From NCBI GenBank assembly GCA_020536535.1, contig JAHLWZ010000450.1, forward strand, positions 1 through 64,000: a stretch of 64,000 bases of DNA. Reading direction: 5' to 3'. Positions 11,001 to 62,555 of this stretch are shown piece by piece (within the stretch, counting starts at the first letter, position 1; the number at the start of each line of letters is the position of its first letter). Source of the DNA: Pelomyxa schiedti. Taxonomy: Eukaryota; Protista; Evosea. The notes under the pieces are model-generated. The model had not been told where the DNA came from. It was given only the letters and a program-made list of their open reading frames with translations, and ran no database searches. Made by a program: the position numbers and the translations under genes.

Positions 11001-14000
11001 TCGAACGACAGGCAGCTGCACTCAACGCCGAAAAGCAAAGTGCACTCCAACAACAAGAAACCACACTCAACTCAGAGAAGCAGAGTGCACTCGAGCAACA
11101 AGAAACCGCACTCAACGCGGAGAAGCAAATCGCGCTCGAGCAGCAAGCAGCATCACTGAACGCGGAAAAGCAAAGTGCACTCGAGAAGCAGGCGGCATCA
11201 CTGAACTCGGAAAAGCAAAGTGCACTGGAGCAACAAGAGGCCTCACTCAACACAGCCAAGCAAAGTGCACTGGAGCAACAAGCAGCATCACTGAACTCGG
11301 AAAAGCAAAGTGCACTGGAGCAACANNNNNNNNNNNNNNNNNNNNNNNNNNNNNNNNNNNNNNNNNNNNNNNNNNNNNNNNNNNNNNNNNNNNNNNNNNN
11401 NNNNNNNNNNNNNNNNNNNNNNNNNCGGAAAAGCAAAGTGCACTGGAGCAACAGGCAACATCGCTTGAGGCGGCAAAGCAGAACGCACTCAAGCAGCAAG
11501 AAACCGCACTCGGCGCGGAAAAGCAAAGTGCACTCGAGCAACAGGCAGCTTCCCTAGAGGCTGAAAAGCAGAACGCACTCAAGCAACAAGAGGCTGCACT
11601 GAGTGCCGAGAAGCGGAACGCTCTTGAAGAGCAGGCAAGTGCACTGAATTCCGAAAAGCAAAGTGCACTCGAGCAGCAAGAATCGGCACTCAACGCGGAA
11701 AAACGGAACGCACTCGAGCAACAGGCAAGTGCACTGGATGCCGAGAAGCAGAACGCACTCAAGCAACAGGAAACAGCACTCAACGCCGAAAAGCGGAACG
11801 CTCTGGAGCAACAAGAAGCTGCACTCGATGCCGAGAAGCAGAACGCCCTTGAACAACAAAAGGTGGCACTTGGCACTGAAAGGCAGAACGCACTGGAAGA
11901 GCAAAAAGCGGCACTGAGTGCTGAAAAGCAAACTGCACTGGAGCATCAAAAGGCAGAACTGAGTGCTGAAAGGCAAACTGCACTGGAAGCACAGAAAGCG
12001 GCACTGGATTCGGAAAAGCAAAGCGCACTGGAAGATCAAAAGGCGGCACTGAACAGTGAAAAGCAAACCGCGCTGGAAGAACAGAAAACGGCACTGAATG
12101 GTGAAAAGCAAAGCGCACTGGAAGATCAAAAGGCAGAACTGAGTGCTGAAAGGCAAACTGCACTGGAGCATCAAAAGGCAGAACTGAGTGCTGAAAAGCA
12201 AACTGCACTGGAGCACCAAAAGGCAGAACTGAGTGCTGAAAGGCAAACTGCACTGGAAGCACAGAAAGCGGCACTGAACAGTGAAAAGCAAAGCGCACTG
12301 GAAGAACAGAAAACGGCACTGAACAGTGAAAAGCAAACCGCGCTGGAAGAACAGAAAACAGCACTGAACGCCGAAAAGCAAAGTGCACTCCAACAGCAAG
12401 AATCTGCACTCAACGAGGAAAAGCGGAACGCACTCGAGCAACAGGCAAGTGCACTTGATGCCGAAAAGCAAAACGCTCTGCAACAACAGGCAAGTGCACT
12501 TGATGCCGAAAAGCAGAAGGCTCTCAAGCAACAGGAGGATGCACTCAGCACAGAGAGGCAGAACGCCATGGAGCAGCAAAAGATTGCACTTGAAGCAGAA
12601 AGAGAAAACGCACTTGAAAAGCAATCAGCCACACTCAACGCCGAGAAGCAAAGCGCACTCGAAAACCAGGCAGCCGCACTTGGTGCGGAAAAAGAGAACG
12701 CACTTGGAAAGCAAGCTGCTGCACTCGAAACGGAAAAGCAAAGCGCACTTGAACAGCAATCTGTTGCACTCCACACAGAAAAGCAAAACGCACTTGAAAA
12801 GCAATCTTGTGAGCTCAATGCAGAAAAGCAGAACGCACTTGAACAGCAATCTGTTGCACTCAATGCAGAAAAGCAAAATGCACTCGAAAAGCAAGCTGCT
12901 GAGCTCAATGCAGAAAAGCAAAACGCACTTGAACAGCAATCTGTTGTGCTCCACACAGAAAAGCAAAACGCACTTGAAAAGCAATCTTGTGAGCTCAACA
13001 CAGAAAAGCAAAACGCACTCGAAAAGCAAGCTGCCGAGCTCAACGCAGAAAGGCTGAAGGACCTAGACCAAAAAGAGGCTGCACTCAGGAAAGAACAGCA
13101 GAAGGCACTTGAAGAGCAAGAGATCACACTCAGGAAGGAGAAGCAGGAGGCACTTGAAGAGCAAGAGGCAACACTCAGGATGGAGAAGCAGAAGGCACTT
13201 GAAGATCAAGAGGTTGCACTGAATGCAGACAAACAAAGTGCACTCGAAAAGCAAGCCATTTCACTCGACGCGGAAAAGCAAAGTGAACTACAGCAGCAAA
13301 AAAGCACACTTGAGGAGGAAATGAAACAACAAGCATTGACACTCAACACAGAGAAGCAGACTGCACTTGAGCAGCAGGCGGCCACACTGAACACAGAAAA
13401 GCAGAAAGCACTTGAGCAGCAGGAATTTGCACTCAAGGCAGAAAAGCAACAAGCACTTGAACAGCAGGCCAGTGTGCTGGAGTCTGAGAAGCAAAAAGCA
13501 CTCGAGCAGCAGGCAGCCACACTCAATGCAGAGAAGCAGCAGGCACTTGAACAACAAGCAAGTGCACTGGATGTCGAAAAGCAAAGTGCCCTGCAGCAAC
13601 AAGAAGCAGAACTCGATGCAGAAAGGAACGGTGCACTTGAACAGCAGGAATTTTCTCTAAGGGATCAAATTCGAACAGTAGAACTAGTCGTTAAAGACAA
13701 AGACTCTGTTATTCAAGCCCTTGAAGGTTCAGTGGAACGACTGCAGAAAGAAACATTTTCTTTGGAAGACCAGAAGAAGCAGATGGCACTTGAAGTTGAA
13801 AGTTTAACTCAAGTTTCTGAGCAGCACTCACACTGTGAGTCCCTCCGTAGGCAACTTGAAGAACAACTACGGAATGAGCTCTCTGCTGTGGAAAATAAGT
13901 TCCAGGAGGTTTGAGAATGCAACAAATTTCTTTTTGTTAACCGTCTTTCAGCAACTTCGATCTTTATCCCATCAATTAGAAGTTGTTGTAATTGTTAAGA

Positions 14001-37644: not shown

Positions 37645-38496
37645 CTATAGCAGGTTGCACCCTCCCCCATCCTTTTTGCCTCCTTTCGCCTTTCCTCCTT
37701 TACCAGTGGTAGTGGTACTTTTCTGCAGGCCTGAAACACCACCCGATGGTTTTTTTGCTTTATCGGCAGCATCTTTCCCAGCCACAACCCGCGTTAGTAG
37801 GTCGTTGAAGATTTCATTCACGTTTGTGCCGTTAAGTGCACAAGCCTGCAAAAACCTAAGCAAAAAAAAAAAGTTCTAGACAGGGTCTTACCTCGAAATA
37901 GGATGCACCGATTTGTGCCGCTGCCTGTTCCGCCTGTTCTCTGGTGACGACTCTCTCCAAATCGGTTTTGTTTCCGACGACGAATACAACCTTGTTTTCA
38001 CTGGCACAGTAGCGTTTGATCTCGTCTCCCCAGTCAACAACTCGCGAGAAGGTTTCTTCGTCGTTGAGATCAAACACGACCATATAACCTTCGCTTCGTT
38101 TGTAGGCGGCCGTTGTAAGATGTCTGAATCTTTCTTCGCCTGAACTGTCCCACGTCTATAGGACAAGGGTTAGGAACTAGGGAAACATTTGTGTTGTACT
38201 ACAAGAGTGAAATCATGTACTTTTTTTTTTTGTTGAATTTCATTGTATGGTAATGCTTATGTTTATGTGTTGGTTTAGTGAAGCACAAGTACCTTGACGC
38301 ATATTTTTCGATCAGGTGCATCGATGTTCTTGATGTGGAAACCCTGTGCGTTCGGGGCAGCGGCGACACCAGGGCCTTGCATGTAGCACGACACGAAAGT
38401 GGTTTTACCACTACCGGCCTCACCGCACATCATTAATTCTATCTCCAGTTTGGGTATGGCAGCGGGAGTGGCTGCGCCTTTGGTCTTCTTCGACAT
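37645..38496 (-). CDS. Divergent Rab-family small GTPase with CaaX end
   Basis: G1 GEAGSGKT, G3 WDSSGEE, RFRHLT..Y, G4 GNKTD, G5 EACA and C-terminal CNLL. Two GT-AG introns. Confidence 0.85.
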
Positions 38497-38998
38497 GTTG
38501 TCTTGTTCGTTTGTCGCGCTGCGTGTGTGTTTGGTTTTGTGGTTTTTTTTTTTTTTTGTGTTCGTTTTTCGGTTCTTGCCCGGTTACTTTTTTTTCCTTC
38601 ACATTTGAAAATAAAATCATTTTTCTGTGGATCATTCTTTACTTGAAAACAGTTGCTTTTATTTTTGCTCTTCACCACTATGGAATGGAAATCTCAGGAG
38701 CTCCTTTTCTCTTACGGTAAGCACCTTTGTGTCCTGATCCACTTTCCCAATGAGAAAAGTTCCTTCTGATTTGATCCAGACATGTTTTCGGTCTATGTGA
38801 GAAGACCTACCTGCCATTCCCATCCTCATCGAAAAATGCATTATCACCGCAAGGCCCAGCTCTTCTGGAGTGACAGTCTGCAGCCCCTCCGGCCCACTCA
38901 GGTTCCAACCGAAATACCCTTGAATTCTTCGTCAGATTCGCTGGTTTGCTAGCAACAATAAACAATACGTCCAACTCACAACCGAAATAGAAACAAAA

Positions 38999-50230: not shown

Positions 50231-53200
50231 ATGCAGGGTACAGGGAAAGGGACAGGCAAGGCCCGCAAGGCCGCTACTGCAGCAGCAGCGCCACCTCCAC
50301 CACCACCAGCAGCCAACAACCCGCCGACGAGCGCAGCCAAGGGCAAGTCGGCGCCGTCGGGGGCGACCACGGCCACGGCCACTGGGGGAGGGAGCAAGAA
50401 GAAGAAGCCCGCGGCTACGACTTCGACAGCGACTGCGACCGCGACCAAAGCGGTAGTGGCTACTGCTGCTGCCTTGTCTGAACCTACGCCCGCGGCCCCG
50501 GCCCCAGCCCCGGCTCCCACAACCCCTGTTGCTGTTGTTGGAGGCGCCTCCACGACGACGGCAACGGCAACGACCGACCCAGCACCCACAAGTGCCACCA
50601 ACAAGAAGAAAAAGAACAAGAACAAAAAACCCAGCGGCGGTGATACTCAGGCCCAGGCGCAGGCTCAGGCTCAGCCTCCAGCTCTGAATCAACCACCCGA
50701 GCCCAGCACCAGCACCACCACCAGTGCTACTGTTATTGTTGCTGCTACTGTTGCTGTTAGTGATAAACAAGGGGCAACTAACGCTAAATCCAACGCCAAT
50801 GGCAGCAGTGGCAAGGCGAAAAGTAAAAAGGGCGGTGCCACCTCTACCGCCGGTGCTTCTGGTTCTACTGCTGCTGCACAGCAGACACCAGCTACCTCGA
50901 CTGGTGCTACTGCGGCACAGAAGAAACAAACTGCTACTGATGCGCAGGGCACAAAGTCGGCGGATTCTACTGCTAAAGCGGCAAAGGCCTCTGCCGACTC
51001 TTCTGCAGTTCCTGTTTCTTCTGTCAGTGCTGCAACTTCCGCCAGCAGTGGTTCCGGCACTACTGCAACTAGTACTACTACTAGTACTGCTAGTTCTGAA
51101 GCCAAGCCTCGAGATAACTTGCAGGACCAAGGAGTGAAAACAGCCTCTACTTCGGCAAGTGGCACGACACCTCCTGGAAGTCAAGTTAGTGCAACTGGGA
51201 CCACTTCAAAGAAGAAGAAAAAAGGGAAGAAAGCCAAGCCAACTTCATTTGCTGCACATGAGGAGCTTGCATATATTGCTTCTTTTCTTTCTGGCGCCCA
51301 GCCGGCTTCTGCAGTCCAAACCACTTCCACAACCTCTACTGCAACCAGCACCGCTGTTCCTAGTTGCTATGTCAATTGTGGTATACCAGCTACCCTTTTC
51401 GTTGATGAGCATATCCTCATAACAGCTGCTAATACTGCTGAGGTACTTTTTTTTTCCCTCTGTCCTCCATACTTACATTTTGGTAGATCGAAGTGGTGGC
51501 AGATTTGAAATCTCCCATGACAGTTTCAGTGCCTGGAAAAGATGAGATTAACGTTACTGGTATGATTGTGTAGTTCGATTTTGTGCCCTAATTTCGCGTA
51601 GTTTCCCATCTACCTCCATTGACTTTGAGAGTGGAAGTATGTTGCCAAATAATTGTTTGCTTTGCGTAACCAAATTCAGCTTCCTACTACATATCCCTCA
51701 GACGATCCACCTTTGTTTTGTCTCAGGTATACCTTCTTTCTATCAAAATCGGGAGTCGTTTGACTGGTATTAGTTCTTGTTGGCTCACCCTGAGTCAACT
51801 TGCAACCTCCTGTCAGCATTTTGATAGACTGTGGAGCGAGCACCAAAACGAATTTATAATATTAAGGCATGTATATCGGAGAGTCAATTACGTTGACTCA
51901 CATATTTTTGTGTTTTGTAGGTGGATGCAATGGCTGAAAACAGAACTCATTGCTTCTTTGGGAATCAAGAGTGTGAATTTGTCCACTGACGAAGTAGCGA
52001 CTGAAATTGGTTTTTTCTTACTGCGTTGATCTTGTGTGTAACTCTTTTTAGAGGATGCTCGTGCAGTTGTAGAAACTGTGAATGATCAAGCGTTTGGGGT
52101 TGATGTTATGCCATATTTGATAGAATACAACAAGTAACGAACTTCCCTCTTGCAACCCTTTCCGAATCTTAAAAAAAAAAACAAGGAAACAAGCAACAGT
52201 GGTTTTCCGGCGCAGTGCACATACTTGCTCTATATGCCTTACCGACTTCCCTGGGACTGAGTTTTCAGAACTGGGTGACTGTGGGCACATGTTTTGCAAT
52301 GATTGCATGCGCACATTCTGGTATTACAGTGACTCTGTATCTTTGGCTTTTCTAACTCCTTCATAGTGCAACCCATATCACCAGTGGTGAAATCGAGTTG
52401 TTACATTGCCCTCAGACAGGATGCAACAAAGATATAGATCCGAATGTAATACGGAGCTTAGTATCTCCAGAACAATATGCGAGGTTCTTGAATGAAAGTT
52501 CAGTTGTCCATGTTTATTCTTTGCAGATACGAACACTTTTTGATTACCAAATCAATGGAGGGAAGACCCGATGTTACTTGGTGTCCTCGCTGTCAGCACA
52601 CAGGTTGGTTTGTTGTTGAGTATACAACCTTATCCAATGTGTTGTAGTTATTGGAGATCTTCACCTCCAGCTTGGGCCTTGCTTATACTGTCATTACAGT
52701 TTTTGTTTGAAATGCAGATCTGGATGGTTCCTATCTTCCTCACTTCTTCCTTTCTCACAACAGTAAAGGCATGCCAAAACACCATGTGTAAGAGTGGAAG
52801 GTACAAATATTCACCCGTGCAGCTTTTTTTTGTTTGTAAAAACCGCTTACAGAACGCCTTGCAAAAATCATTGCACAGGAGCGCCTTGCTACTACAAAAG
52901 AGATGGCAGCCAAGTTAGCAAAGTACCCAAGGGAAAAAAATGCATTTCCTCTCCACTTAAGGTAAATAGGAGACGAAAGGAAGTAGAACTTGAAATCAAA
53001 GACTTGGACTGGATCAAGGCCAATACCAAAGTCTGTCCACACTGTCACATTGCCATTGAAAAGACCTCTGGCTGTATGGCTTGAGGTAAACAGCGTGGAG
53101 TTGCTCACGGTGTAAACTAGGTAACCACATGTACTGCCAACATTGTGGAAAAGAGTTCTGCTACCACTGCTGCGCCAAGATTGTGGGCTATTCTCATTTC

Positions 53201-53498
53201 TCAGAAAGCAACTGTTTTCTATTCCACTACCCTGAAACGGAAGTTGTATGTGTTCCCATAATTAGGGGTTACCCGTATTGATGGTGTTGTCTAAATTACA
53301 TTGTAGCTTCGCCCCCGCTTTGCTCCACCACCAAGGCGTGAGAACCCAAAAATGCGAGAGAAGCTCCAGACACTCCCCAGCGGCCATCCCGACCTATACT
53401 CATGCCCAAGGTGCAAGTACCGCCATGCCAAAGTAGAGCCCAACAACCAGGTTTCTTGCATGAACTGCAAGCTCATGTTCTGCTTCCTATGTCTGCAG
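50231..53498 (+). CDS. RNF14/ARA54-like RBR E3 ubiquitin ligase (RWD-RING1-IBR-Rcat), main portion
   Basis: RWD (SHLPPLTL, LPTTYPSDDPP, SCWLT, WMQWLK), RING1 (CSIC...CGHMFCNDC...CP), IBR (WCPRC...CLYCHYSFCLKC) and Rcat (CPHCHIAIEKTSG|CNHMYC..CGKEFC). The last + strand exon ends at a GT donor (53499). Confidence 0.88.
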
Positions 53499-53650
53499 GT
53501 CTGTTACTGTCAATCTCCACTCAAAACAAAGACTAATCTAATGGCGAACTACCAAACAACAACCAATTGAATTTACAACAACAAACAACACACCAAGCAC
53601 AAAAAACAAGCGCTGCTTATGATCACACACATTCGCAAAAAAAAAAAAAG

Positions 53651-54009
53651 ATTGGAAGTTTTATTGTATCATCACTTATGCGCCTGTCAATTCCTTCCGT
53701 TTTCTGCTGTTATATAAGAGTGTCATTTCCCTATAACTTCCACAACGTTCTAATTGCGTTGGCTTTTGGTCTTGCCTTCACAGTCTCCTTACTGGAAGTT
53801 CCAATATGCTTCATCACCATGAAAATGTACTTCGACCCCAATTCTCCCAGTTTTGATTTTTCTCATTTTAACCCAGATTATCTGGTTCCTTTGTGTATAT
53901 TTCCTTTGCCCTGATTATCATTGGGGCACTTCCCTATCTCCTTCCTGCCTACTTGTTTATAAGCCTAGAGCTAAGGGCCCGTCAACTCCAACGTCCAATG
54001 CTACCCTAA
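53651..54009 (+). CDS. Terminal exons of the SLC43-like MFS transporter, lying on the strand opposite to the rest of the gene
   Basis: After the AG at 53649-50: IGSFIVSSLMRLSIPSVFCCYIRVSFPYNFHNVLIALAFGLAFTVSLLEVPICF, then LSGSFVYISFALIIIGALPYLLPAYLF...*. These match the last TM helices and continue ...SYLPLQ in phase 0. Confidence 0.75.
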
Positions 54010-54220
54010 AATAGCACCCAACACCACACCCACTTGTGAAAAACCAAAAATTCAGAAAACAATAAATTTTTAAATTGAAAAATCAAAACAAAAGAGAGGA
54101 AGGCACAACTCTGTGTGCTCTGATAGATGAATTAGAAACTTTCTCATCTGTTGTTTTTCAACTGGGGCAATTAGAGCCAAGGGAAGCACCCTTTACAGCG
54201 TCAAAAGGGTGGAGTCTACA

Positions 54221-54556
54221 TCACCAGCCCCAGCGAGCCAGTTGCCTCTTTTCCTTCTTGATGCAAACCTCGTCCTCAAGGTCGTCGGCGTCCTCGTCCC
54301 ACTCCGCATCCACGTCCTCGATGTACTGTGCGGATTCGAGCTTGGGCGGGGGCGCGACGGGGCCGCGCTGAGCTTCCTCGGCGATGTACTCCTCGTCGTC
54401 GGGCTTGAGGACGACCTTCTTGGCAGCCCCCCAGTGTTGCTGGGACGCCAGCCGGAAGACCGCGGGGGCCTTGGCCCTGGTCACGGGTGTCCCAAGGGGT
54501 GTGTGCTGCTTACAGCCCCCTTTGATGTTGAAGTGATCCCGGGTAGCCGCAATTGG
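54221..54556 (-). CDS. Terminal exon of the RBR ligase, lying on the strand opposite to the rest of the gene
   Basis: Preceded by a gctaac branch-like motif and a ttttttcacag acceptor. Reads PIAATRDHFNIKGGCKQHT..., continuing ...FCFLCLQ in phase 0. Confidence 0.75.
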   Translation of the reverse strand, partial: PIAATRDHFNIKGGCKQHTPLGTPVTRAKAPAVFRLASQQHWGAAKKVVLKPDDEEYIAEEAQRGPVAPPPKLESAQYIEDVDAEWDEDADDLEDEVCIKKEKRQLARWGW

Positions 54557-54660
54557 CTGTGAAAAAAGAATGTTAGCGGGGACGGGGGCGGGGGAGGGGT
54601 TTTTTTTTTTTTTTTTGAATTGATTAAAGAGATGGCGAAAAGGCAAATTTGGAAAGAAAC

Positions 54661-56706
54661 CTGCAAAGGAAGGTAGGAGACAAGAATGAAAATACACCAA
54701 ATAGTGAAAAGACAAGTGGTAAAAAGGAAAAGCATCTGTAAGGTCATAAGCTGTACCAAGAACATAGAAAAAATAAATACAAACGAGGAGAGGAATGTGG
54801 TCAACAGTCCATCTTTATGTTGGGACAATGAATTTTTTTTATAATTTCTGGGAATGGAAACCCATAAAATGGCAGTAAAATAATCCCACTTTGATTGAGG
54901 ATTGTAAATAGCGTAAGCATTGAGTTATCTTGAGCACCCATATCTGGAAAGAAAAAAAAAACTTGAGTGTCCCACAAGCTATCCATTTCCTACCTAAAAG
55001 AATCAGAGGTGCCATCCCAGAAAACACCACAACGAGGAGGTATCCAACACTTATATAGATCAATCCAAGAACGTACCGAGGACTCCATGCAAGAGATAGG
55101 ATGGTCCGGAACCTAGACTGCTACACATATTTTAGAAGGTACAGCAACCCAAGTAATGCCGACCTGAGGGGGTATAGAGCTCAGTGAAGCAGAAGCGGAA
55201 TCATTCATGGGACCTTCCAAGGGCACGAACCCAAGGGTATTCTTGGCGCAAATTGATTTGATTTTATCCATCATTTGGCGAAATTCAAACCCAATAGTGG
55301 CGTAATCACCTGGCACGTGGCACTTTTTGGTTGATCAATATTCTTGTGTGTAATTTGGGTCTCCCATTCCCCAGAAGTAACAAAAGTCATACCGTACCGT
55401 TGATGGGAAAAACAATGTCACGCCAATAGACCAGACAACAATTGACAGTATTGTGTAACTGCCAAACAATACATGGGTGCTCACACCAAGTTGAAAGTAC
55501 AGTATCTGCATCAGGTCAAATCATAAAAACTAAGAGAAACATGTGCACCTGCATAATTAAAAAACCAAAACTTCTCCTGGTGAGTGTATCACTCTTCTGA
55601 TAGATATGAAGAGGTACCTTCCCATGGAAAAAGCTGAACAAATCAAACTTATTGCAATATTGGGCCGACAAAATATATTTCCCATGTGTAAGGAGGCCAT
55701 GAAAAAGCCTGCCCCGCCTTCGACACAATGAGAAGTGAAGTATGGTGGCCATTCCTTACATACCGAATGCAATGAAGAAGAAAGCTGCCCCATAAGCATT
55801 AAATACTTGGTAATCAGCAAAAGTCCATAATATGGCGCCCAGACTGTGAAACTGAGCATGATAAGAGAAGTTCAGCATGGAAACGTCGTTTACCAATCCA
55901 CTTATAAGGCACACGAATTTTGGTCCACAGTTATCTACAGCCCATGCACAACTGAAAAATGACAGTGCAGTTCCTACGTGTAGTCCGTCACCAACGGTAA
56001 CTTCAAATGAAACCAGTCAGCATACCAAGAACTGCAAAAGCATAGAGGTAGCTCAGGTCAATTTCCTGCTGCACACATGTCCCATTCTCAAACACACACC
56101 CATCAGAAAAAACGCCACTATCTTTTTGGATAACGAAAAAAAAATGAGCAACTCTTTAAAAAACAAAGACGAGGATATACCTTTGAGAATCAGATACAAC
56201 GAGGGCATGCCAAAAACATACCCGCTGAGCAACCCCACCGCCCCCACGTGGAAAAGTAGCGACACGGAATCACTTGTGGGAGGGCACCGGCAAACCCTGG
56301 CCCCGGACAACTTGGTCGCCGCCCTCCCTCCCCTGCCCCCTCCCCGTCCCATAATCCCGGCGCCGCCGCCGCCCCCTGCCCCTCCGCCACCGACGCCCTC
56401 CATCAAAGAGAACGCCGAGGGCAACGACGGCGACGAGGACGAGGCCGAGGCGCCGAGCGAGACGGAGGAGCCGCCCGCGGCGGCGTCGGCGAGCGCCATC
56501 GCCACCCCCACGTCGGCGGCGGACTTCTGCGCGTGGGTCCTGGGGCCTCGGCGCCACTCGCGCTCTATTCGGCGCTTCTCGTCGCGGCGCTTGCTCTCGA
56601 GCCCTATGGCCTTGAGAGCGGCCAGGGTCTCCTGACGATCGCGTGCGTCGCCGACGTGCTCCACGCAGCACGCGTCGTTGAGCGCGTCCGCGGTTTCGGC
56701 TGACAT
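54661..56706 (-). CDS. MFS transporter, SLC43 (LAT3/4)/Fmp42-like, main portion
   Basis: GLLSGYVFGMPSLYLILK|DSGVFSDGC...CVQQEIDL and AVDNCGPK, with several hydrophobic exons. The last minus-strand exon ends ILVSYLPLQ at a GT donor (54660). Confidence 0.75.
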
Positions 56707-57096
56707 GAAAGTCGGTGCTGGCCTTGTTTTTTTTTCTGTTGGTGATTTGTAAAAACGCCAAACGAGATTTGAAAGGAAAACGGAAGAAGGTTGTTGGATT
56801 TGGGATACAGATTGCTGCCAGCTGTTGAAAAGATGCTCAACGAGGTGAATTCCTGCGACAGCGACCAGCCACTTCGGCATTGCCACCTCGCACTTCGAAC
56901 TGGCAATCTCATCACCAGGGCTCAACTTCTCACTCACTTTGACAATCACCAGCGATGACAGGTCGTTCTTCGCACTCACAAACCACTTGCCATTTGCTCT
57001 GGCTTACCCATGGCTGCGCGACCCTCAGTCATGCAGTGGCCAGTATCTGGGCTCCTGAGAGTGTACGAAAGTGGGAGCCGCTGTACAGCCTCCACG

Positions 57097-57362: not shown

Positions 57363-59557
57363 CTATCCCTCATTGGCGTGAATGAGCCCTTTCCTGGCGG
57401 GCCCTGGCTTTGTACTCCTTGATGAGTGCCCCACACCCTGTACAATCCTCTTCGTACTGCCATGTGTTGTGCTCATCACCCAGGCCCTTCCACTGAACGA
57501 GGAACTGCCTGCCATGGCTCTTCCACCTTTCTCCAACGATGGCCTCCATCTCCTTCTGCCCTGGGCTCGCGTGTGTATAGTGTCATCCCCCTGCGGTGGG
57601 GACCTTTTGGGGTCGAGGTCGTGCTGGGTGTCTGGTGGATCCTCCGTTTCGGCATCGTCTCCTCGTTCGTGCTGCGTTTGGTCGTCGGCTTGTGACCTCC
57701 AGTCGTCTCTCTGTTCGGGGGTCTCATTGTGGCTTGTGTGCACCTCACCCCCCGCCCTTTCCGGCCCCTCCTCGGGTATTGCGTGGCACTTGCATAGATG
57801 CCCCAAGTTTACCAGTTTCGGGGACTTCTGGCCGTCCATAGTCTCGAGCCTGGCAGCCCAATTCACGGGGAGACTTGTGATGCGGTACGGGCCCTTCCAC
57901 TTGTTGGCCAGTTTGCCTAGCTCCCTGTCCTTGTGTCCGCCTGTCCGTAGGACATACACTAGATCCCCTACCCTGAACTTCCTTTCTGTGGCTGTTGTGG
58001 CTTTGGTGCGCTCGTCATCCCATGCCTGCCATATGAGCTCTGCTGTCCGTTGCGCCAGCCGCCACGCTTCCCGTACCTTCTTGGTCACCCTTTCGGCTTG
58101 CCCGCCAACCAAGACCTCCTCACCCGTCCCAGCCATCGCCCCTGGAGTCCGGGCATCCCTCCCATGCTCGAGGTAGAAAGGTGAAAATCCTGTTGCTCTG
58201 CTAGTTGCCGTGCGGTACGCAAATGTCATCATTGGCAGGAGCTCATCCCAATTGTCCTTATCCTTGCCAGCGTGTATACGCAGCATTTCCACCAGTATGT
58301 GGTTGTACCGCTCAGTTTTCCCATCGGCCTGAGGGTGATACGCCGTCGTCTTCCTCTGTTCGATGTGTAGTGCCGTGCATAGCCCTTCCATGATCCGGGT
58401 CACAAAGTGGGAGCCCGATCACTAATGATCACACGTGGGACACCCCTTTGGCACACCCAATTCCTTAGCACTGCCCGTACTGCTGACTCGGCGTCCGGGT
58501 GTTTTGTGGCCTTCAATTCCACGTCTCCTGTCAAGTGGTCGATCATCACGAGGATATACGCATTCCCTCGTCTGGTGGATCTCAGTGGTCCGATGAAGTC
58601 CATACTCATGACCTCCCCAGGTTCACCTGGCACCGCCATTGGGAAGCCCACAGCTGCCCCTTTCCGGGCCGGCACCTTGGCCACCTTGCACTCGTGACAG
58701 CTGTTGCAGTGGCGAGTAATGTCTGCCCCCATGTTTGGCCACCAGAAATGGCCTTTGATGCGGTCCAACGTATATGCTTCGGAAAGATGACCCGCGAAGA
58801 TGCTGGCGTGGTTATCCTGCATTACCTGTCCCCTCATGATCGTTGGAACAACCACCGAGCGGTAGATCAGTTTCCTCCGGTGGTTCGCCTCCTTGTGGTG
58901 CAGTATTCCTTCGCAGACCTCAAAGTCCGCCCTTTCCAGGTCTAAGTGGTGCAGGTCCTTTGGCAAGGGTGATCCCCCTAGCCATGCTGATAGCGCTTGG
59001 CAGTCGGTGTCTGTTGCTTGCGCCTCCTTCCACCCAACCAAGTTGTCCCCCAACGCCGCAACAACAAACACTCGTGGCATCCTGCTGATTGTGTCCACAT
59101 CCCCCGACTGCTTTCCCGGCCTAAATTCCACTACAGCCCCATAATCATCCAGCAGTATTTGCCAGTGGGCAACCCTGGCACACGGGTGTTCCTGGTTCTG
59201 CATCCAGGTTAGGGCTTTGTTGTCTGTCTTGACAACACATCCGACTCCGTGTATATAGCTGCGGAATTTCTTAAGTGCCCACACGACTGCCGCCGCCTCT
59301 AGCTCACACACGGTATCGTACTTCTTTTCGTGGGGCGTGGTGACCCTGCTTGCAAGCTCGATAATGCGTTCCGCTCCCTTCGCGTCCATTTGTACCAGCG
59401 CGGCCCCCATTCCCACCTTGCTAGCGTCCGTGTGAATTTCCAGCCTGAACTCTGAGCTGTAATCTGGGTACTCAAGCAGGAGTTTCTCGGCAATTAGGTG
59501 CTTAATGTGTGTGAACGCTTCCTCGCAGCGCTCATCCCACACCCATGGTGCCGCCAC
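57363..59557 (-). pseudogene. Truncated pol: RT connection/RNase H + integrase, with a frameshift near 58403
   Basis: IHTDASKVGMGAAL, ELEAAAVVWAL and VKTDNKAL (RNase H). H..GH...C..C Zn finger. SMDFIGP, IISDR, YHPQADGKTER (DDE) and KWKGPY. Confidence 0.9.
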
Positions 59558-62117: not shown

Positions 62118-62555
62118 AATTAGTTGTTTTGGTAGTATCCGTTTCTTTTACCAGAAGATGTTGCTTGAGTTTCAGATGATGTGGTAGTGGATGAACTTTG
62201 TTCATTTGTGTTGCTTGAACAAGGATGCTCTTGGCATACAGACTCACTTGTATTATTAAAACAAGGAATCTCATCATTACAAATCTCCTGAGGCACATCA
62301 ACCTCCACCACCTGGCTCAAATTTAAAACAAAATTGGAAGAGTTTCATCATTGGAATCAGATCCAGCATTTTGAAGTGATGATACTGACTGGGTATGCCT
62401 GGATCGGTCACGAAGAGAATGGGAATGCTTGAGTCGCTTAGGTTTTGGAGGAGTTNNNNNNNNNNNNNNNNNNNNNNNNNNNNNNNNNNNNNNNNNNNNN
62501 NNNNNNNNNNNNNNNNNNNNNNNNNNNNNNNNNNNNNNNNNNNNNNNNNNNNNNN

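Follow-up and report, generated by a model that had tools for sequence, protein, structure and literature searches.

Gene content and layout of the locus

The 64,000-nucleotide window analysed here, a stretch of the Pelomyxa schiedti genome assembly, contains two neighbouring genes that face each other, a predicted RWD-RBR E3 ligase gene on the + strand and a putative membrane-protein gene on the - strand. The region is eukaryotic in character, with many short GT-AG introns. As assembled, the terminal exon of each gene lies on the strand opposite to the rest of that gene, and the terminal exons of both are held in a segment of about 950 nt (53650-54599) between a run of 13 A (A13) and a run of 17 T (T17). 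The preliminary description of this DNA had placed the last exons on the wrong strands between these two runs, and inspection of the sequence confirms this arrangement.

We assessed the orientation of the segment with Logan assembled contigs of public sequencing runs, aligned to positions 51900-56100 of the window (4201 letters). RNA is represented by two single-cell runs (X3 and X4) and DNA-like sequence by one run (X1); the RNA and DNA runs come from different cells of one culture. The features of the locus are as follows, with the evidence for each in brackets.

50231-53498, + strand: predicted RWD-RBR (RNF14-type) E3 ligase gene, all exons except the last (mapping of the public protein P0001, Pfam, RNA joints agreeing with the introns)
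53307-53498, + strand: penultimate exon of the ligase gene (phase 0 end, ...FCFLCLQ)
53499-53649, + strand: 5' part of the last intron of the ligase gene, running into A13 (GT donor at 53499-53500)
53637-53649, + strand: A13 run, the left breakpoint (homopolymer count)
53650-54599, no strand assigned: segment that is very probably misoriented (opposite-strand RNA joints, loose end of the X1 contig, 16-mer unique in the assembly)
53651-53826 and 53877-54009, + strand as assembled (wrong for the gene): two terminal exons of the membrane-protein gene, stop included (X3 and X4 contigs)
54556-54221, - strand as assembled (wrong for the gene): last exon of the ligase gene, 111 aa plus stop (RNA contigs of X3 and X4)
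54600-54616, + strand: T17 run, the right breakpoint and an inverted repeat of the A13 run (homopolymer count)
54617-54660, - strand: 5' part of the last intron of the membrane-protein gene (donor GT at 54660-54659)
55322-55164, 55120-54994, 54943-54862, 54812-54785 and 54735-54661, - strand: upstream exons with RNA support, membrane-protein gene (CT..AC joints of X3 and X4 contigs)

The two runs that bound the segment are the longest of just ten homopolymers of at least 11 nt in the 64-kb window, and together they form a perfect inverted repeat of 13-14 nt with a spacing of about 950 nt. As assembled, the left junction reads cgc-A(n)-GATTGGAAG, beginning GATTGG after the A-run, and the right junction reads GGGGAGGGG-T(n)-GAATTG, with GGGG preceding the T-run. 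The assembly sequence has no Ns at either breakpoint. The segment is present in single copy in the 52.4-Mb assembly, a search of which found no second copy or haplotig. Another inverted homopolymer set, A11 ... T11/T15, is located at 37862-38557, within 700 nt.

Both genes had been described as stopping at a GT donor, and we find this to be the case with a shift of one base in each: the ligase exon ends at 53498, with the donor at 53499-53500, and the membrane-protein exon ends at 54661, with the donor at 54660-54659. Both donors and both acceptors are in phase 0, so that either pairing of the exons is in frame.

The two genes and their terminal exons

A public predicted protein of 926 aa (P0001) maps residue for residue on the + strand at 50231-54006. 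Pfam identifies in it an RWD domain (PF05773, E 2e-12, residues 412-496), N-terminal to the RBR module, together with zf-RING_2, IBR and IBR_1 matches. The best PDB match of P0001 is ARIH1 (E 2e-23), in which IEKTSGCNHMYC is aligned to IEKDGGCNHMVC, the catalytic-cysteine motif; no solved RNF14 chain is among the PDB matches. The earlier label 'RNF14-like' is therefore supported as an architecture, RWD plus RING1-IBR-RING2, and the ligase has the RNF14/Itt1 domain order, its subfamily being assigned by domain order only. Like RNF14/Itt1-type ligases, the Pelomyxa protein has its RWD domain N-terminal to RING1-IBR-RING2 and carries a GCNHM catalytic-cysteine motif. It differs from them in about 400 aa of low-complexity sequence, rich in Ala, Thr and Ser, at the N-terminus, and in a putative extra zinc module, IBR/RING2-like, that follows RING2 and is split by the last intron. 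This extra module has the form CPRC...CMNC...CFLC...H...C and is composed of 53307-53498 plus 54556-54500(-). We know of no fourth zinc module after RING2 in RNF14. The C-terminus of human RNF14 is also acidic.

The penultimate exon (53307-53498) ends ...CPRCKYRHAKVEPNNQVSCMNCKLMFCFLCLQ and is followed directly by the GT at 53499-53500. The Pfam IBR match on this exon reaches profile position 56 of 65, right at the exon end, and the alignment to RING2 of ARIH1 extends to ...CL. Thus, the zinc module seems to be cut before its last His/Cys pair, as would be expected were the minus-strand exon to complete it. The minus-strand exon 54556-54221 is preceded by a cacag acceptor, and its protein starts PIAATRDHFNIKGGCKQHT; read from the sequence, it offers a His at residue 8 and a Cys at residue 15. 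The later part of this 111-aa tail is strongly acidic (21 D+E). The acidic tail gave no match in Pfam and nothing meaningful in a PDB sequence search, and a word-indexed protein search with all 111 aa found no relatives in the range 61-194 aa.

Two 47-nt GT-AG introns of the ligase gene (52923-52969 and 53074-53120) are retained in the RNA contigs listed and spliced in P0001. The contigs that retain them come from X3 (52861-53245) and X4 (up to 53130), and in both the neighbouring introns have been removed. Retention puts in-frame stops before and inside RING2. One X4 RNA contig has G>A at 52933, inside a retained 47-nt intron, explicable by allelic variation, error or editing.

The membrane-protein gene extends upstream to about 56400, with RNA support for the part at 54661-55322. 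Its exon 54735-54661 ends ...SYLPLQ, followed by the GT at 54660-54659. The + strand tail is split by a 50-nt GT-AG intron (53827-53876) that had not been mentioned before and that is confirmed by RNA contigs from three runs. The tail encodes three hydrophobic, transmembrane (TM)-like 19-mers (KD 1.65-2.2), and more such stretches are found in the upstream exons, to which RNA contigs join the tail. Long open reading frames on the - strand at 57366-59000, just upstream of this gene, encode LTR-retrotransposon sequence that is integrase-like and chromodomain-like, and they adjoin a very GC-rich stretch at 56150-56750.

The minus-strand gene probably encodes a membrane protein, with the major facilitator superfamily (MFS) as a weak lead to its family. 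Pfam gave no match for the TM tail or for ten exon-level pieces of the gene, the exons (9-58 aa) being too short for a profile search to be telling. A PDB search with the TM tail and with a 104-aa ORF piece returned nothing meaningful; matches to VAMP2 at E 0.3 were set aside as compositional. In the Atlas feature search, the 104-aa piece matched Sugar_tr/MFS clusters at just 0.80-0.83, a weak lead, and the TM tail had no usable match. An exhaustive search of representative proteins with the 58-aa TM tail retrieved only P0001 and two repetitive proteins of a different kind, and so assigned the tail to no family. The exon-by-exon searches did not establish the earlier label 'SLC43-like'. SLC43 proteins have motifs resembling the N-terminal ...GMPSLYLILKG... 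and later ones of this protein, a likeness that we treat as a lead.

Orientation of the segment in RNA and DNA contigs

In both single-cell RNA runs, the ligase gene continues on the opposite strand of the assembly. Contigs of X3 (639 nt) and X4 (740 nt) join 53307-53495(+) directly to 54559-54110(-). The alignment reports this joint (53495/54559) as 'opposite strands', and the canonical exon ends to which it corresponds are 53498 and 54556(-). The membrane-protein gene behaves in the reciprocal way. An X4 RNA contig has an opposite-strand joint at 53649/54663, with canonical ends at 54661(-) and 53651(+), and a 900-nt X3 contig runs from 55322 to 54994 on the - strand and then through 53651-53826 and 53877-54029 on the + strand. 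Both opposite-strand joints therefore sit on canonical phase-0 exon ends, and the contigs that have them also carry ordinary GT..AG and CT..AC introns of the two genes. The mRNAs therefore correspond to a flipped segment. The earlier proposal that flipping the segment would restore both genes in phase 0 is thus borne out, both by the phase of the four exon ends and by the RNA contigs with the flipped joins. We also considered that the gene models had been misread and that the tails are foreign to both genes; this was rejected, because the RNA contigs join the tails to the genes.

The flipped form is also seen at the DNA level, in a view that comprises the left junction only and comes from one run. 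An X1 contig of 3091 nt (depth 88.9), which we take to be DNA-like because it is unspliced, covers 51900-53649 without a mismatch and, beyond the left flank and the A-run, goes on into CCCCTCCCCC (16-mer; continuation AAAAAACCCCTCCCCC). The 16-mer AAAAAACCCCTCCCCC is unique both within the window and across the 52.4-Mb assembly, its one position being 54590-54605(-). Thus, the X1 contig shows the flipped left junction in DNA. The A-run at this junction is A19 in the contig versus A13 in the assembly. The contig stops 10 nt past the A-run, and reads seem to be cut at 54572-54628.

Neither an as-assembled junction nor an as-assembled splice was found among the X1, X3 and X4 contigs and joints listed. 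The assembled orientation is therefore contradicted by two RNA runs and by one DNA-like contig of the same organism. A further run from a different study (X5) provides low-depth pieces of both terminal exons (53669-53944 and 54339-54490), which reach neither breakpoint. One of these pieces lacks the 50-nt intron 53827-53876 and so represents spliced RNA or cDNA of P. schiedti.

Probable origin of the flip and its consequences

The published account of the P. schiedti genome (52.4 Mb, 5337 scaffolds) describes a template of seven micromanipulated cells, whole-genome amplified with the Illustra Single Cell GenomiPhi (phi29) kit, and sequencing by Illumina and by Nanopore, the latter from T7-endonuclease-treated amplified DNA (PMC8887013). 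All reads were co-assembled with SPAdes 3.11.1 (--sc, k 21-121) and scaffolded with P_RNA_scaffolder, and transcriptomes were made by Smart-seq2 with Nextera (PMC8887013). One X3 contig has Nextera adapter ends, which fits this Smart-seq2/Nextera method. In a study of multiple displacement amplification (MDA), more than 85% of chimeras were inverted sequences, and more than 70% of chimera junctions arose when a displaced 3' end primed on 2-21 complementary nucleotides (Lasken & Stockwell 2007, PMC1855051). The breakpoints at the Pelomyxa locus, A/T runs of 13-17 nt, are within this reported range of short complementarity.

We conclude that the segment 53650-54599 has very probably been reverse-complemented in the assembly relative to the organism's DNA, as an artefact of amplification or assembly. 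A chimera at homopolymers introduced in one of these steps had been proposed as the cause, and the proposal is supported by the flipped RNA joins, the flipped left junction in X1 and the use of phi29-amplified DNA. The real locus would then consist of two ordinary convergent genes with 3' ends about 80 nt apart. The ligase would splice from 53498 to the exon 54556-54221 over an intron of about 200 nt that contains the A-run followed by a C-rich and pyrimidine tract, and the membrane-protein gene would splice from 54661 to the exons within 53651-54009 over a shorter intron, about 60 nt, with the A-run at its end.

The flip very probably arose in the making of the genome sequence, perhaps through template switching by phi29 at the A and T runs of 13-19 nt. 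The two runs lie about 950 nt apart, and a nascent strand ending in the A-run could prime on the T-run if the latter belonged to a displaced, same-sense strand. This would yield cgc-A(n)-GATTGG as assembled, and the mirror event would yield GGGG-T(n)-GAATTG. Short-read coverage breaks at the A/T runs and the neighbouring G-rich tract. Because the ends of the segment are mutually reverse-complementary, it fits its flanks either way, and a few chimeric reads, perhaps of Nanopore origin and taken up by SPAdes to close gaps, could have fixed the wrong orientation. A13 versus A19 is the kind of homopolymer miscount expected of such gap-closing reads. Some reads must have carried the assembled junctions; the step that introduced the flip may have been either an amplification chimera or gap closure.

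The locus shares with MDA inverted chimeras its origin in phi29-amplified single cells, the inversion itself, junctions at 13-17 nt of complementarity, and an intramolecular, local (about 950 nt) character. However, one template switch in MDA leaves a single junction, accompanied by inverted duplication or deletion, whereas the inversion here is clean and two-ended. We infer that it needed either two reciprocal types of chimera or an assembler join blind to orientation.

How much of this the assembler could have done by itself is a related question. Within the artefact reading, it is conceivable, although doubtful, that the assembler or scaffolder alone misoriented a short contig, with no contribution from amplification chimeras. 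An overlap join would be blind to orientation, given the reverse-complementary ends of the segment; the reads seem to be cut at 54572-54628; A13 in the assembly versus A19 in X1 has the look of a junction that error-prone reads were used to rebuild; and the window does have 100-N scaffolding gaps. The breakpoints, however, have no Ns, so P_RNA_scaffolder did not make the join, and SPAdes with k up to 121 needs junction-carrying reads, which would most obviously be chimeric ones from MDA or Nanopore sequencing.

The discrepancy between the assembly and the contigs could also reflect biology, either of the DNA or of the RNA. In the former case recombination between the inverted A/T runs would give rise to both orientations in the culture, as a true inversion polymorphism or as an invertible switch that swaps exons, with one form caught by the assembly and the other by the RNA and X1. 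Such an arrangement would account for the clean assembled junctions at a perfect 13-14-nt inverted repeat and for the phase 0 of both alternative splice pairings, and the assembly pooled seven cells, so that heterogeneity could exist. We nevertheless consider it very unlikely. The as-assembled junction and splice are absent from the contigs aligned, the RNA runs and the DNA contig having the flipped form only; the material was phi29-amplified, a chemistry known for exactly such junctions; and the as-assembled genes would encode a ligase lacking its last zinc ligands and a membrane protein lacking its last three TM-like stretches. The earlier suggestion of an exon-swap switch finds no support: none of the contigs aligned has the as-assembled junctions. 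That living P. schiedti cells hold both orientations of a homopolymer-flanked invertible segment that swaps terminal exons is, if anything, harder still to credit; if true, the RBR ligase of some nuclei or cells would end in a membrane tail, and their transporter would be truncated and acidic-tailed. In bacterial shufflons and phase-variation invertons a short segment likewise lies within inverted repeats, and a flip here would swap C-terminal exons, but there is no recombinase and the 'repeats' are mere homopolymers. The likeness to invertible switches is formal only. In the latter case, the DNA would be as assembled, and trans-splicing would unite exons whose transcripts come from opposite strands into the mRNAs, which fits RNA joints that employ canonical splice sites and, as the assembly is written, link opposite strands. 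This possibility, which had also been raised, is scarcely conceivable: it is contradicted by the unspliced X1 contig (depth 89), which has the flipped junction in DNA-like sequence, and two reciprocal events mimicking a simple inversion would be far less parsimonious.

An inversion in the assembly has consequences for the predicted proteome. The assembly had been said to allow a ligase with a membrane tail, and P0001 turns out to be such a product: it follows the ligase up to ...CMNCKL, takes an intron at 53478-53718 and continues into the membrane tail. This intron has no RNA support among the RNA contigs and joints listed. P0001 falsely fuses the RWD-RBR ligase to the C-terminal TM helices of the transporter and calls for correction in the proteome.

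With an artefact as the very probable cause of the flip, the public P. schiedti assembly would contain at least one local inversion, by which two genes are broken. In biological terms the locus would then be unremarkable, a convergent pair of genes whose terminal exons are normal, and the oddity would belong to a known class of technical artefact. If other such oddities have the same cause, wrong-strand exons, micro-inversions and odd fusions in this and other MDA-based protist assemblies should be presumed artefactual until RNA or unamplified DNA has confirmed them.

Elsewhere in the window there are four 100-N scaffolding gaps (686-785, 1401-1500, 11326-11425 and 62456-62555). The gaps are flanked by near-identical repeat units (...gcaaagtgcactggagcaaca...), which suggests that they are collapsed or unresolved tandem coding repeats.
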